Both the position numbers and the translations under genes were made by a program. A DNA stretch of 63,931 nucleotides, the filler included, from Octopus bimaculoides (lineage: Eukaryota), in assembly GCF_001194135.2 (NCBI RefSeq). It is 4 parts of 3 records of this genome, joined end to end, with 100 filler letters (N's around TTAATTAATTAA, not from the genome) between each part and the next. Parts side by side here need not be neighbours in the genome. Positions count along the whole stretch, not along the records: positions 27,502 to 43,892 come from NC_068983.1; 3 more parts are not named here. The stretch is one strand, 5' to 3'. Under the pieces are notes generated by a model, which was given only the letters and a program-made list of their open reading frames with translations, searched no databases and had not been told where the DNA came from. Below, one piece after another: positions 35,238 through 41,417 of the stretch; the first letter of the stretch is position 1; each line of letters begins with the position of its first letter.

Positions 35238-35249
35238 CACCAGCACCAA
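35238..35249 (+). CDS. Candidate 12-nt micro-exon (A-P-A-P), phase 1-1
   Basis: ttttattttctttcatgatccaaaag|CACCAGCACCAA|gtaagt; keeps frame after exon 33317-33488. Confidence 0.5.
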
Positions 35250-35366
35250 GTAAGTCAAAACTTTCACTTTCTTTCTATTTCATCATCAAACAAATCATGT
35301 ACTCGTTTGTTTGTTCCTCTATCTATGCGTGCCCTCAGAATACCGACAATTATAAATATAAATCGT

Positions 35367-35658
35367 GGAGGCGCAACGGCCCAGTGGTTAGGGCAGCGGA
35401 CTCGCGGTCATAGGATCGCGGTTTCGATTCCCAGACCGGGCGTTGTGAGTGTTTATTGAGCGAAAACACCTAAAGCTCCACGAGGCTCCGGCAGGGGATG
35501 GTGGTGAAACCTGCTGTACTCTTTCACCACAACTTTCTCTCAATCTTTCTTCCTGTTTCTGTTGTGCCTGTGATTCAAAGGGTCAGCCTTGTCACACTGT
35601 GTCACGCTGAATATCCCCGAGAACTACGCTAAGGGTACACGTGTCTGTGGAATGCTCA
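35367..35658 (+). mobile_element. Young-looking tRNA-derived SINE, running into a gap
   Basis: GGAGGCGCAACGGCCCAGTGGTTAGGG (A-box) ... GGTTTCGATTCCC (B-box), CpGs retained. Confidence 0.75.
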
Positions 35659-37142
35659 NNNNNNNNNNNNNNNNNNNNNNNNNNNNNNNNNNNNNNNNNN
35701 NNNNNNNNNNNNNNNNNNNNNNNNNNNNNNNNNNNNNNNNNNNNNNNNNNNNNNNNNNNNNNNNNNNNNNNNNNNNNNNNNNNNNNNNNNNNNNNNNNNN
35801 NNNNNNNNNNNNNNNNNNNNNNNNNNNNNNNNNNNNNNNNNNNNNNNNNNNNNNNNNNNNNNNNNNNNNNNNNNNNNNNNNNNNNNNNNNNNNNNNNNNN
35901 NNNNNNNNNNNNNNNNNNNNNNNNNNNNNNNNNNNNNNNNNNNNNNNNNNNNNNNNNNNNNNNNNNNNNNNNNNNNNNNNNNNNNNNNNNNNNNNNNNNN
36001 NNNNNNNNNNNNNNNNNNNNNNNNNNNNNNNNNNNNNNNNNNNNNNNNNNNNNNNNNNNNNNNNNNNNNNNNNNNNNNNNNNNNNNNNNNNNNNNNNNNN
36101 NNNNNNNNNNNNNNNNNNNNNNNNNNNNNNNNNNNNNNNNNNNNNNNNNNNNNNNNNNNNNNNNNNNNNNNNNNNNNNNNNNNNNNNNNNNNNNNNNNNN
36201 NNNNNNNNNNNNNNNNNNNNNNNNNNNNNNNNNNNNNNNNNNNNNNNNNNNNNNNNNNNNNNNNNNNNNNNNNNNNNNNNNNNNNNNNNNNNNNNNNNNN
36301 NNNNNNNNNNNNNNNNNNNNNNNNNNNNNNNNNNNNNNNNNNNNNNNNNNNNNNNNNNNNNNNNNNNNNNNNNNNNNNNNNNNNNNNNNNNNNNACGAAA
36401 GAATTCTGGCCGAAATAAGATTAAGATTAATGTAATATAAAGCTGAAGCAAATTAACACCAAATATACAGTGCGTGTGTTTTTATTGGCTAAACTGGCAA
36501 TATGACCATCCCCAAGTACAACAATATATATATATTATTTTGTTTAAAAGAGTTCCAACATTGTCTGTTTTTTATGTTTTATTTATATTCCTGCAGAACC
36601 AATGTGGGGTATAGAATATGGAATATACAATATATAATATAATATACAATATATAATATAAAATAAAATAAAATAAAAATGGATGGCACCATGAAATAAA
36701 GTATTGAATGTAGATGAAATATTGAGTGTTCAATATAAAGGATCAACAATATAAATATATATATATAAATATATAAATATATAAATATATAAAGGCTACT
36801 CGAGTTTCAGGGCTATTTCCCTTCGTCATGGCTGGTATGACAGACTTTAACAGACTGTAATAAGTTGGCTGGTTTTCTGTCTTTTATACCAATTCCTTTG
36901 GACAGCAGCAGTAGGTGTTTGGCTATTTTTAGAATTGATGTCAAATCTATTTTTAGAAATGATGATATTTTAATTTATTGTTTTGTGTTTGGGTTGTAGG
37001 GATAAGATTTTTAAACCCCAGTAGGTGTTTGGCTGTTCTTAGAAATTATGCCAAATCTATTTATAGAAATGATGATATCTGAGAGATTTTTTTGTGTTTT
37101 GGTTATAGGGATAAGATTTTTAAACCCCAAGTAAGATAAATT

Positions 37143-37595
37143 TAATCAACGAAAGAAACAAATAGAGAAATGAGACAGACAGCATAAAGAATATTCCCTT
37201 CATCAGTTGTCCACTGTTTTATCTACTCCGCATTTCAAAACAGTCCTTTCCGCAAAGCAAAGTAAATAAAATTTGGGATTTTCCTTTCTTCCACTTCCTT
37301 TCTAAAGACATATGTGCTTTTGCCTGTCTCTTCTCAAAGCCCGTTTTTCCAGTGTTCAGTATTTCACATCATCTTGGCTTAACAGACCTCACCGTTTAAT
37401 TTTACTGTTCTGTTCTTACTGTCCTGTTTTTGTTACCACGTTAACCATCCTTACCATGCGGTAAGGACTGTTTTAACGAAGTCGCGTCTTGTCCCTACCA
37501 TCGAAACGCGGAGTAGATAAAACAGGGGACAAGTGATGAAGGGAATGTTCTTTATGTTGCCTGTCGCGTTTCTCTATTTCTTTCTTTCGTTGCTC
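37143..37595. mobile_element. Fold-back element with 110-140 bp inverted arms
   Basis: CAACGAAAGAAACAAATAGAGAAA...CATCAGTTGTCCACTGTTTTATCTACTCCGC pairs with 37455-37595. Confidence 0.7.
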
Positions 37596-37866
37596 GAAAA
37601 AAGTTCGTTTTCGATGTTTTTGCTTTTTATGTTCCCGTTTCTCATTTTGTTGACATTTTTTAATGTCCTGTACCCTTATATGCATTATATATACATATAT
37701 TGTAGGTATGTACATATATGTATGAATATATGCATATATTTATATATATATATGTGTTTATATATATGTACGTATTTGTTTATATATATATATATATGTA
37801 TGTATGTATATATATATATATATATATATNNNNNNNNNNNNNNNNNNNNNNNNNNNNNNNNNNNNN

Positions 37867-37921
<55 letters not shown>

Positions 37922-38614
37922 GTATATATCAGTATATATCAATCTATATTTCGCATTCTGAAGAGATTTACTAAAACTAGTAAATTGAGACGATCATAAA
38001 TGCTACCTTCTTTGTTATCTAATTAAATTAAAGGCATGCCAGTGAAAACGTCGAGTTTCCCCTTGTTATTTACATTCATTTTCTTCTCATATATATATAC
38101 ATATATATATATGTACATATATGCTGTGAGTGATAATTTTCATGTTAACCCCTCAACGTCCGTATCGGTTATCACATTTTACTGCTTTTTCCGCATTTCT
38201 GTCCCTTTTGTACATCAGGTATTTGTACGTGTGTATGTATGTATGTATGTTTGTATCTATCTATCTATCTATGTGTCTATCAATCTATCTATCTATGCAT
38301 GCATGTATGTGTGTATGTACGTATTATGTACTGAAAGACTGACATTCTCAAGTATACGGACACAACTTAATGTAATAAGTACACGTAACAGTTGAGCTAA
38401 ATGCAAAAACTTATAGATTTAACTATTTACACGTTATTATTGTGATTATATTAATATAATTTAACGAATACATACAAGGTGCCTGATGCTAAATATACTA
38501 CATAAAATATTGTAGATAATCCGATCTTTATACCTATAACAATATATCAAAATGAAATGTAACACAATTACTTTCTCTTTCATATTCAACATTCGTCATT
38601 AAAACCGCCAACAG

Positions 38615-38620
38615 TAACAA
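38615..38620 (+). CDS. Candidate 6-nt micro-exon, phase 1-1
   Basis: ctttctctttcatattcaacattcgtcattaaaaccgccaacag|TAACAA|gtaagt. Confidence 0.3.
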
Positions 38621-38735
38621 GTAAGTATATACATACTTCCTTCAATTTGTATATATCTGTCTGCAAATTAAAGCGTCTGTCTATCTGGTATATCTACTAT
38701 TCTAAATTCAATCGAGAACATCGTAAACAAATATA

Positions 38736-38788
<53 letters not shown>

Positions 38789-38897
38789 ATTACTACTACT
38801 ACTACTACTGCTGCTGCTGCTAAATAATAATAATAATGATAATAATGATAATAATAATAATAATAATAATAATGATAATAATAATAATAATAATAAT

Positions 38898-39324
38898 AGT
38901 GAAATCTAAAAACAGAAGCAATTCCTATCATAGTAGGTGCCTTGGGTATAATAAAAAAAATATTCAGACAAATACATAACAAAAACACCAGGACTTACAA
39001 ATATATATAACATACAAAAANNNNNNNNNNNNNNNNNNNNNNNNNNNNNNNNNNNNNNNNNNNNNNNNNNNNNNNNNNNNNNNNNNNNNNNNNNNNNNNN
39101 NNNNNNNNNNNNNNNNNNNNNNNNNNNNNNNNNNNNNNNNNNNNNNNNNNNNNNNNNNNNNNNNNNNNNNNNNNNNNNNNNNNNNNNNNNNNNNNNNNNN
39201 NNNNNNNNNCTATCAACACAGTAACCATAAGAGCATCACAGCAAACCACAGCACATACCCAAGGCACACAGAGCTGTGCTCGGTAGTGAAGTGAAAGCAC
39301 GTTATAAAAATAAAACTACTGAAC

Positions 39325-40110: not shown

Positions 40111-40114
40111 ACAT

Positions 40115-40115
40115 G

Positions 40116-40187
<72 letters not shown>

Positions 40188-40219
40188 CACTACTACCCCC
40201 ACTACTACTACTACTATTG

Positions 40220-40274
<55 letters not shown>

Positions 40275-40279
40275 CGCTG

Positions 40280-40345
<66 letters not shown>

Positions 40346-40360
40346 TTACTATTACCATCA
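40115..40360. repeat. Compound (AAT)n(TAC)n(TGC)n microsatellite, representative of many (AT, AC, AG, AAT, TATG) tracts in the window
   Basis: Directly visible. Confidence 0.95.
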
Positions 40361-41058
40361 CTGCCTTAGGCCTATAAATGCCTTTAATTAAGTTTTTCGT
40401 ATTTGGCATGTATTTTTTATATATTGTTAATACTCTACCCTTTATTTGATTGTTTGCAGAATGATTTTTCCACATCTTATCAAACTAAGCTTTCTTTGAA
40501 ATCAAGTTAGAAAAGAGTAAATACGCCAGAATTCTAGCACTTTCGCGTCATTGCAAGCTTTGTCAGTTGGACAGCGAAAAACATACGTTTTACTGTATTC
40601 CTATCAAGTCAATTCAACGATTATTGAAATATTCATTCTTTGCTAATATATCTGATGTGAAGGCAAGCAATTGCTTAGCATCGTTTTAAAACACGGGATT
40701 TTAACGAGAATAGTGTACATAGGAAGATCAGTCTAAAGAAATTGAATGTCAATTTATGTATTTACATATATGTATATAACTGTAGGTGAGTGTGTGCATG
40801 AATGTGTATGTATATATAGATATGTGTGTGTGTGCGTGTGCGTGTGCATGTGTGTGTGTATTGGAGTAAATGTAATGACAAGCAAGTTAGGCAAGACGAT
40901 ATACAGAATTATTTAATAAAAAAATTTTACATACGTGTGAATATTAAAACGTCCGACTAACACGGAATATAAATGATATCAGGAATTAAAGAGGTTGAGT
41001 GAGGGTTTTACGAAACCTACAGTTGTTTCTGAGGGCTTAGTGGTATATATGTATATGC

Positions 41059-41090
<32 letters not shown>

Positions 41091-41402
41091 ATATATATAT
41101 CTGTATATATTCGTCATGAATTTACAGATTATAACTTTAGCATGCATACAGACACAAGTTAGTCCACAAATGCACTGTAATAGGTGAGATCAAGTGCAAA
41201 ATCTCATTAATATATGCACATCTATTTAAACGATATAGTATTATGATTATAGTAGTTTAAATTAATGAATATATTCAGGAGGAAAGACGTGAAATATAAT
41301 TTTTGATATTATCTAGAAATCATTTTTTTCTATTCTTTATAAGAAATGATTATGAAATATTACTAATTTACTTTTTCTTTTATTTACATTCTTTGACAAA
41401 AG

Positions 41403-41417
41403 TAACAACAGCTAAAG
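41403..41417 (+). CDS. Candidate 15-nt micro-exon (x-T-T-A-K), phase 1-1
   Basis: ttactttttcttttatttacattctttgacaaaag|TAACAACAGCTAAAG|gtgagt. Confidence 0.5.

Follow-up and report, generated by a model that had tools for sequence, protein, structure and literature searches.

Two paralogous families of very short sequence elements (6-15 nucleotides (nt)), here called type P and type T, recur in the inter-domain introns of an octopus gene that probably encodes a large secreted multidomain protein. We consider it reasonably likely that these elements are genuine, unannotated micro-exons encoding proline- and threonine-rich linkers between protein domains. Three of them lie in a 63,931-nt stretch of Octopus bimaculoides DNA (assembly GCF_001194135.2; the window, along the whole of which positions are counted), in the piece at 27502-43892 (NC_068983.1) that was analysed: it carries the gene on its + strand, has 33% G+C and contains five runs of N. 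From the window alone, the three sites would have been called pseudo-exons; comparative evidence lifts the micro-exon reading from chance level to probable. An initial annotation of the window had proposed symmetric micro-exons that add a Pro/Thr-rich linker after a TILa domain. What now speaks for this proposal is conservation at the orthologous locus, the existence of paralogues that keep splice signals and frame, and a copy in Argonauta; splicing of the elements into mRNA, the choice between AGs and any regulation are inferences from these comparisons.

The three candidate sites

The candidates and their upstream segments are as follows (slashes mark predicted splice boundaries).

Site 1, candidate micro-exon of type P: 35238-35249, + strand, 12 nt; caaaag/CACCAGCACCAA/gtaagt; APAP in phase 1; donor GTAAGT at 35250
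Site 2, candidate micro-exon of type T: 38615-38620, + strand, 6 nt; caacag/TAACAA/gtaagt; IT; donor GTAAGTAT at 38621
Site 3, candidate micro-exon of type T: 41403-41417, + strand, 15 nt; caaaag/TAACAACAGCTAAAG/gtgagt; ITTAK; donor GTGAGTAT at 41418
Site 1 upstream flank: 35127-35237, + strand; conserved, with a branch-point-like CTTAC and a pyrimidine tract (nhmmer envelope 35127-35260)
Site 2 upstream segment: 38229-38614, + strand; homologous to the intron upstream of VWA exons
Site 3 upstream segment: 40752-41402, + strand; homologous to the intron 5' of each VWA exon, with CTAAT and a long pyrimidine tract

The three AG...GTRAGT sites are present at exactly the coordinates given by the initial annotation, as are the second in-frame AGs at 35244 (site 1) and 41412 (site 3), use of which would leave 6 nt in either case. 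The preceding TILa exon (exon C, listed below with the host gene) ends in phase 1, and with lengths of 12, 6 and 15 nt the frame is kept through all three sites; the phase compatibility is automatic because the lengths are multiples of 3. The spliced reading GKCV-APAP-IT-ITTAK (RGKCVAPAPITITTAKG) is reproduced with its frame open. The junctions predicted for the window are GGAAAATGTGTCG+CACCAGCACCAA, CACCAA+TAACAA, TAACAA+TAACAACAGCTAAAG, CACCAA+TAACAACAGCTAAAG and CACCAA+CTAAAG.

Two paralogous families

The three sites are not independent of each other: site 1 belongs to type P and sites 2 and 3 to type T. Their paralogy with one another, and with elements in the VWA repeat units of the same gene, had been missed in the initial annotation. 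It emerges from comparison with L001, the O. vulgaris chromosome locus (OX597816.1) of a protein with five VWA domains and a VWD domain (P0036, CAI9720130.1), which was reached by a profile-free search with the O. bimaculoides protein P0001. The segment around site 2 (38229-38643) matches L001 29237-29662 (blastn, E = 3e-33, 62.5% identity), and that around site 3 (40752-41569) matches L001 28895-29791 (E = 6e-144). The site 3 region also matches four places in L001 that are 7.2 kb apart and constitute tandem VWA repeat units. Each of the four units has the sequence CAAAAG/TAACGACAGTTAAAG/GTGAGTATCTGCTAC about 815 nt upstream of its VWA exon and, some 1035 nt beyond that exon, a second element, cccag/TATTACCAGTGCCAA/gtaagtatcc, to which site 1 aligns better. 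The flank of site 1 is homologous to L001 24613-24767 and to the remaining type P copies. Within the piece itself, the 70-nt flanks of sites 2 and 3 are each other's best non-self match; flank scores are 28 for site 2 against the unit copy and 20 for site 2 against site 3, values reached by 0 of 2728 background windows, and 17 for site 1 against site 3 (background fraction 0.0015).

Profile searches gave the following census.

Type P: site 1, with its O. vulgaris orthologue; copies in the units (six); a single Argonauta copy; and, at L001 11138-11152, a copy that has diverged
Type T: sites 2 and 3, each with its O. vulgaris orthologue; copies in the units (four); and, at L001 11700-11705, a copy that has diverged

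Every copy of either type lies on the sense strand. The four complete VWA-to-VWA introns of L001 contain one type P and one type T element each, the latter preceding each of the four downstream VWA exons, and type P following all five VWA exons, at the distances already given; the same searches found neither type in the introns between exons A and B or B and C. All copies retain the AG and a GT[AG]AGT donor (GTAAAT in Argonauta), and in most the donor extends to GTRAGTAT, which is complementary to U1 through position +8. Type P elements are 12 or 15 nt long (the unit copies and the copy at L001 11138-11152 are 15 nt, with signals intact) and type T elements 15 or 6 nt, so that the sole difference of length within type P is 3 nt. 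An AG at -6 is found in all Octopus copies of both families, with a distal AG at -15 (-12 in site 1), and all AGs within 20 nt of all donors are in frame, including four in Argonauta (-21, -15, -12 and 0). Read in phase 1, type P elements yield APAP, VLPVP, VLPVT, EPPAP and EAARP, and type T elements ITTAK, TTTAK, ITTVK, IT and IK.

The exons that these elements would join are of matching phase. Phase 1 is the starting phase of the VWA exon (L001 23151-23717, 567 nt), of VWD exon 1 and of an EGF exon of Argonauta; for the VWA and EGF exons it is the end phase as well. Joined directly, consecutive VWA exons (ACTTGTAATG+GTTGTGATAAGG) read KRTCN-G-CDK; with both elements in place (ACTTGTAATG+TATTACCAGTGCCAA+TAACGACAGTTAAAG+GTTGTGATAAGG) they read KRTCN-VLPVPITTVK-G-CDK. 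Other peptides predicted upon inclusion are, for example, TCNVLPVPITTVK and GKCVAPAPITITTAK.

Points against, and the neutral alternative

A number of observations weigh against micro-exons and are gathered here. The 9.4 kb following exon C contain seven GTRAGT motifs on the + strand (4.0 expected); three of these have an AG 6, 9, 12 or 15 nt upstream, compared with an expectation of 0.76 (P = 0.044, 1000 dinucleotide shuffles), which is weak, and the minus strand of the same 9.4 kb has two such sites among three donors. Across the piece, some AG is found 3-18 nt upstream of 8 of the 11 + strand GTRAGT motifs. The pyrimidine tracts of the candidate acceptors are mediocre (percentiles 88, 49 and 76 among all AGs for sites 1, 2 and 3, compared with 98 and 94 for exons B and C), and two of the three acceptors are AAG. 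Site 2 has, in addition to its poor tract, lost the AG at -15 that is typical of its family (TAAAAC), and its CTAAT branch-point motif is degraded: it is the weakest of the three and may be a decaying copy, sites 1 and 3 being the better candidates. Among paralogues, conservation of the 'exon' bases does not exceed that of the upstream flank (identity of sites 2 and 3 is 0.60 over -20 to -1; that of site 2 and the unit copy is ~80% in the upstream flank), and the paralogue identity profile around site 3 has no peak at the site. Because the four unit copies are near-identical, independent lineages are few (~4 per family). Type T was not found in Argonauta by profile or pattern search.

Protein models belong on the same side. 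None in the searched collections spans the exon C junction: a first search retrieves only P0001, which stops at exon A; a VWA query retrieves only a 248-amino acid (aa) O. bimaculoides protein that reads through its donor; in a third search, neither O. sinensis nor the newer O. bimaculoides assembly yielded an orthologue. Two paralogues have TILa joined directly to VWA (XP_052822700.1 of O. bimaculoides, locus L003, RNA-supported; P0072 of Argonauta, locus L004, a model of unstated basis), and no type P or T copies were found in L003 or L004, where the models have their linker residues built into large exons. The sequences VTQTV (XP_052822700.1) and KVP (P0072) were considered as products of micro-exons and rejected, mapping having placed both within ordinary exons. 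In favour of the micro-exon reading it counts that annotation routinely overlooks exons as short as 15 nt or below (PMC8831610). A search of the literature for octopus micro-exons yielded only general background.

Much of this could be understood if the elements were neutral relics: pseudo-exons that were duplicated with the introns of the repeat units, and whose motifs survive because too little time has passed to erase them. Pseudo-exons with good splice signals are common in long introns. The marginal statistic in the window, the two similar antisense sites, the missing conservation peak at site 3 and the partial decay of site 2 all fit this explanation. So does the small difference between exons (92% identity for exon A, 90% for exon C) and introns (86-89%) of the two Octopus species. 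This exon-intron contrast is low because the host protein evolves fast, and with exons A and C no more than 92% and 90% identical, plain conservation discriminates poorly at this distance. Neutral survival is nevertheless unlikely, for the splice signals are conserved in excess of their surroundings.

The evidence comes in part from the orthologous locus. Positions 27514-42380 of the window are collinear with L001 68489-80305 at 80-89% identity, and all three sites are retained in O. vulgaris. Site 1, including AG and GTAAGT, is identical; site 2 is identical in exon and donor, with a change of C to A at -3; site 3 differs in its first exon base (T to C, Ile to Thr) and keeps AG and donor. From AG through GTRAGT, the three sites together have 1 mismatch in 57 bases, where windows placed at random in these alignment blocks would have 6.95 (P = 0.008). 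The intronic GTRAGT motifs that can be aligned are conserved in four of four cases on the sense strand, but in neither of two on the antisense strand. Paralogues point the same way: all pairs keep 0.83-1.00 identity in the donor hexamer, whereas in diverged pairs identity drops to 0.20-0.35 over positions +7 to +26 of the adjoining intron. That every AG is in frame is likewise not what neutral relics would lead one to expect.

A type P element in Argonauta

The copy of a type P element in another genus also argues against neutral survival. L002 is the Argonauta hians locus of a partial protein model, P0057, and holds the orthologues of exons A, B and C (exon B at L002 14143-14334; the exon C copy ends at 16321, likewise in phase 1). 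Apart from the type P match, only exons can be aligned between the window and L002. A type P profile built from Octopus copies only matches L002 7333-7427 with 14.5 bits (E = 5e-4); the best scores in 60 local dinucleotide shuffles have a mean of 3.5 bits and reach 8.3 at most. The element within this match is as follows.

Argonauta type P copy: L002 7409-7423, sense strand, 15 nt; ggCTAATctattaatcttttttactttccag/tgccag/AAGCCGCCCGCCCAG/gtaaatat

It lies ~675 nt upstream of an unannotated EGF exon of phase 1-1 that precedes the VWD exons, a position that corresponds to the type P copy of O. vulgaris that follows the last VWA exon. In the 10 kb that follow exon C in Argonauta, no counterpart of sites 1-3 of the window can be recognised. 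A second match (L002 17401-17486, 7.8 bits) was not used: its score is within the range of the decoys and its donor, GTAATT, is poor.

Certain features of L002 were noted in passing. The unannotated EGF exon (IQCTKNMCRNGGTCISDGDSYKCVCVEGFYGTICEK, L002 8097-8207, phase 1-1) is upstream of the annotated start of P0057, and the real Argonauta gene therefore extends further 5'. An EGF-like frame (DPCVLNLCQNGGSCIRAGNSYRCLCEFRYTGKNCE, L002 16683-16797) follows exon C by 360 nt; it has a phase-1 donor and no AG acceptor (ctg for cag), as might be the case with an exon that is dying, a non-canonical site or an error in the sequence. The corresponding place in Octopus yielded no EGF exon.

Two less likely readings: splicing aids and a short isoform

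A second alternative accepts selection on the elements and denies them a place in mRNA. The inter-domain introns are long and repeat-rich (>10.4 kb in the window, ~6.7 kb in the VWA units), and the elements might serve their removal as decoy or stepping-stone exons through recursive splicing, intra-splicing or binding of U1. Consistent with such a role, selection appears to act mainly on donor, AG and upstream flank rather than on the 'exon' bases; only donor motifs of the sense strand are conserved, among them AG/GTGAGT at 40784-40791; and the evidence-based models of paralogues have direct joins from domain to domain. Elements that are spliced out need not preserve the reading frame, yet the lengths here are 6, 12 and 15 nt and the nearby AGs are in frame. 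Classical recursive sites have AG abutting GT, which is not the arrangement of the three sites, with 6-15 nt in between. The peptides (APAP, VLPVP, EPPAP, EAARP, ITTAK, ITTVK), finally, are consistently linker-like. A purely auxiliary function is on balance quite unlikely. The motif at 40784-40791 (aactgtag/GTGAGTgt) is built like a recursive site and lies in a TG-rich, low-complexity context; it is also conserved in O. vulgaris.

The remaining alternative would make the downstream sites irrelevant, at least to one isoform. If the exon C donor at 33489 were read through, translation would end six codons on (GKCVGKYINS, then stop) and the transcript could be polyadenylated. The stop codon (33506-33508) and an AATAAA some 190 nt later (33696-33701) are both kept in O. 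vulgaris, where the reading is GKYIKS followed by a stop. Against this stand the exon C donor itself (GTAAGTAC), which is strong and conserved, the phase-1 donor that Argonauta keeps at the same place, and the O. vulgaris annotation, which ties exon C to a VWA-rich model running downstream; the conserved families, moreover, would be left without explanation. We regard a short isoform of this kind as highly improbable. The C-terminus of P0057 (ERYING) was considered as a similar read-through and rejected, being the normal coding sequence of a partial model.

How inclusion would work

The micro-exon reading, to which we return, implies a simple scheme. All flanking domain exons are of phase 1-1, and an exon whose length is a multiple of 3 can therefore be included or skipped without breaking the frame. 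Type P would contribute x-P-x-P in phase 1 and type T I-T-T-x-K or I-T/K. Inclusion of the three window sites in order would place GKCV-APAP-IT-ITTAK-G ahead of the next domain; within the VWA array, a P+T pair would convert a two-residue join (C-N-G-C) to C-N-VLPVPITTVK-G-C, a hinge rich in Pro, Thr and Val. Exons this short cannot use ordinary exon definition and would have to rely on special signals. One would be a donor whose complementarity to U1 is extended (most copies have GTRAGTAT). The other would be a conserved stretch of ~60 nt upstream, comprising a branch point of CTAAT type and a pyrimidine tract of 25-30 nt that is set back from the AG. The elements would have been duplicated along with the repeat units and subsequently kept under selection for splice signals and frame.

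A more ambitious version, in which each inter-domain intron has a type P element together with one or two of type T, a cassette whose members are included combinatorially and generate linkers of 0 to ~11 residues, is doubtful on the comparisons at hand. If it held, micro-exons would tune spacing or glycosylation in a secreted adhesive or matrix protein, by a device that predates the Octopus-Argonauta split and is invisible to annotations.

The host gene, its annotation and its repeats

The piece contains three consecutive exons of one + strand gene, with canonical splice sites and joined in frame.

Exon A: 27503-27743, + strand; C8 domain (Pfam C8, 1.6e-11); truncated at the edge of the piece; ends in phase 1
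Exon B: 32236-32429, + strand; TIL-like; phase 1 to phase 0; acceptor cacgcag/AA, donor AAA/gtaagt
Exon C: 33317-33488, + strand; TILa/EGF-like (Pfam TILa, 1e-6); phase 0 to phase 1 (GKCV + g)

Exon A (donor tgta/gtaagt) is 100% identical to the end of P0001, a 276-aa protein with VWD and C8. Exon B matches the TIL regions of relatives by tblastn, Pfam TIL itself giving no score, and exon C has its O. vulgaris orthologue at L001 72374-72545. The ordered module VWD, C8, TIL, TILa is thus accounted for by P0001 (VWD and C8), by Pfam (C8 and TILa) and by alignment (the TIL exon). Between the two Octopus species, a manual count finds ~17 of 172 bases and 10 of 57 residues of exon C changed, with all cysteines kept. 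Relatives of the host gene are named zonadhesin-like or collagen alpha-1(XIV)-like; the protein is probably large, secreted and multidomain, with the O. vulgaris order VWA array, VWD-C8-TIL-TILa, then probably further VWA domains. The host sequence available shows neither a PTS/mucin domain nor a cystine knot or transmembrane segment. No large coding exon follows exon C across 10.4 kb of the window, and a next large exon (VWD start, VWA, EGF, PAN) was found neither there nor within 9.2 kb in O. vulgaris.

Both gene models annotated in L001 (O. vulgaris, 10001-81750) probably represent one and the same gene, and the annotation there looks faulty. The model for P0036 cuts each VWA exon at an internal GT (NVIG/CDK) instead of at the tgtaatg/gtatgt donor; it includes VWD exons two times over (57186/64716 and 59640/67159), a 7.5-kb duplication beside the N run at 60063-60162; and it skips exons A-C, ending in the intron after exon B. 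The second model (1725 aa, VWA-rich) starts at an out-of-frame ATG within exon C (72519) and may be an ab initio artefact. In any case the O. vulgaris models are fragmented and partly mis-joined. P0001, both L001 models and P0057 omit the elements, and would be wrong in detail if these are spliced in.

The sequence 3' of exon C is repeat-rich, with microsatellites, a tRNA-derived short interspersed nuclear element (SINE), an inverted repeat resembling a miniature inverted-repeat transposable element (MITE), retroelement tails and a helicase fragment; Rfam and ARAGORN find no match in the piece. Gaps 1-3 (N runs) are all in intron sequence between the candidates, whose frame is therefore independent of them. 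For gaps 1 and 2 the flanks cannot be aligned to L001, although the outer blocks are collinear, and they look like lineage-specific repeats or insertions; the sequences on either side of gap 3 match one copy of a single dispersed repeat. The suggestion that more micro-exons might be hidden in the N gaps finds no support in O. vulgaris: between the three orthologous sites L001 has no N (its sole N run, that at 60063-60162, is outside the relevant stretch) and no further type P or T member.

Adjoining gap 1 is the tRNA-derived SINE-like element (35366-35658, head ggcgcaacggcccagtggttagggcagcggactcgcggtc), which is called by neither ARAGORN nor Rfam; since O. vulgaris lacks it at the orthologous place, it is probably a lineage-specific insertion. 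The MITE-like inverted repeat (37147-37236 and 37503-37592) has 90-nt arms that are 90% complementary and 266 nt apart. A second pair of arms, of 126 nt (39237-39362 and 43767-43892), 96% complementary and 4.4 kb apart, encloses site 3; the arm repeat occurs at least six times in L001, in both orientations. An open reading frame (ORF) fragment on the - strand at 42150-42278 (FPVRLSYAMTINQSEGQTLD) appears to resemble the C-terminal motif of PIF1/Helitron-type helicases and is presumably a transposon remnant. Thr/Ala-rich ORFs of the + strand (38672-38824 and 40030-40374) are (ACT)n(GCT)n(AAT)n microsatellites, adjoined by retroelement tails (38903-39007 and 39746-39973), and could be mistaken for mucin PTS exons.

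Comparison with known systems

The domains of the host protein have familiar relatives. The VWD-C8-TIL-TILa module occurs in zonadhesin, IgGFc-binding protein and the gel-forming mucins, and VWA arrays are found in collagen VI/XIV-like proteins and matrilins; the host resembles both groups in having C8, TILa and VWD (the last in P0001) and, in P0036, five VWA domains. A VWA array combined with a single VWD module is, to our knowledge, a cephalopod or molluscan arrangement without characterised function. The label 'mucus-type protein' that the initial annotation had attached to the host finds no support: with its Thr/Ala-rich ORFs accounted for as microsatellites, the piece has no PTS domain, and the architecture is that of a VWA array with VWD-C8-TIL-TILa.

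The elements have several of the properties by which micro-exons (≤27-30 nt) are generally recognised: AG/GT boundaries, preservation of frame, and signals conserved in other species. Serial mini-exons are known from the 5' exons 4-8 of vertebrate fast skeletal troponin T and from the MSD1 region of NCAM (15, 48, 42 and 3 nt), which encodes a Pro/Thr/Ser-rich hinge between extracellular modules. As in these genes, very short frame-preserving exons would lie between ordinary ones, and inclusion would alter only the length of a flexible segment. Their inclusion is proven by cDNA and their alternative use documented, whereas inclusion of the octopus elements is inferred from comparative sequence only; the octopus elements differ also in forming two paralogous families that recur in each tandem domain repeat unit.

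The initial annotation had found the sites reminiscent of schistosome micro-exon genes (MEGs); kinship with these finds no support. MEGs encode secreted proteins in symmetric exons that measure from a few bases to a few tens, with long introns between them (10.1101/2023.06.21.545858; PMC4350168). The octopus candidates, too, are symmetric, tiny and situated in long introns of a gene for a secreted protein; there is no sequence relationship, however, and the defining architecture is absent, since the coding sequence of MEGs consists mostly of tandem symmetric micro-exons, placed between a signal-peptide exon and a terminal exon, whereas the octopus gene would have at most 33 nt of them per intron, between domain exons of 172-567 nt.

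The neural micro-exons of bilaterians, which depend on the eMIC domain of SRRM3/4 and on a UGC motif just upstream of the AG, reside mostly in intracellular proteins of neurons. The octopus elements share with them a length of ≤27 nt, strong donors, conserved flanking introns and a preserved frame. They differ in their host, an extracellular protein of adhesion or matrix type, and in their signals: in sites 1-3 and the unit copies, the ~30 nt preceding the AG contain no TGC, the Argonauta copy alone having TGCCAG.

Should the micro-exon reading fail, the elements would remain conserved intronic splicing signals in need of an explanation. Should it hold, comparison of paralogous introns would have revealed exons too short for gene predictors or alignment-based annotation. 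The octopus gene would then be an animal example outside both the nervous system and the flatworm MEGs, in which a paired cassette of 6-15-nt exons accompanies each tandem domain unit and encodes its hinges.

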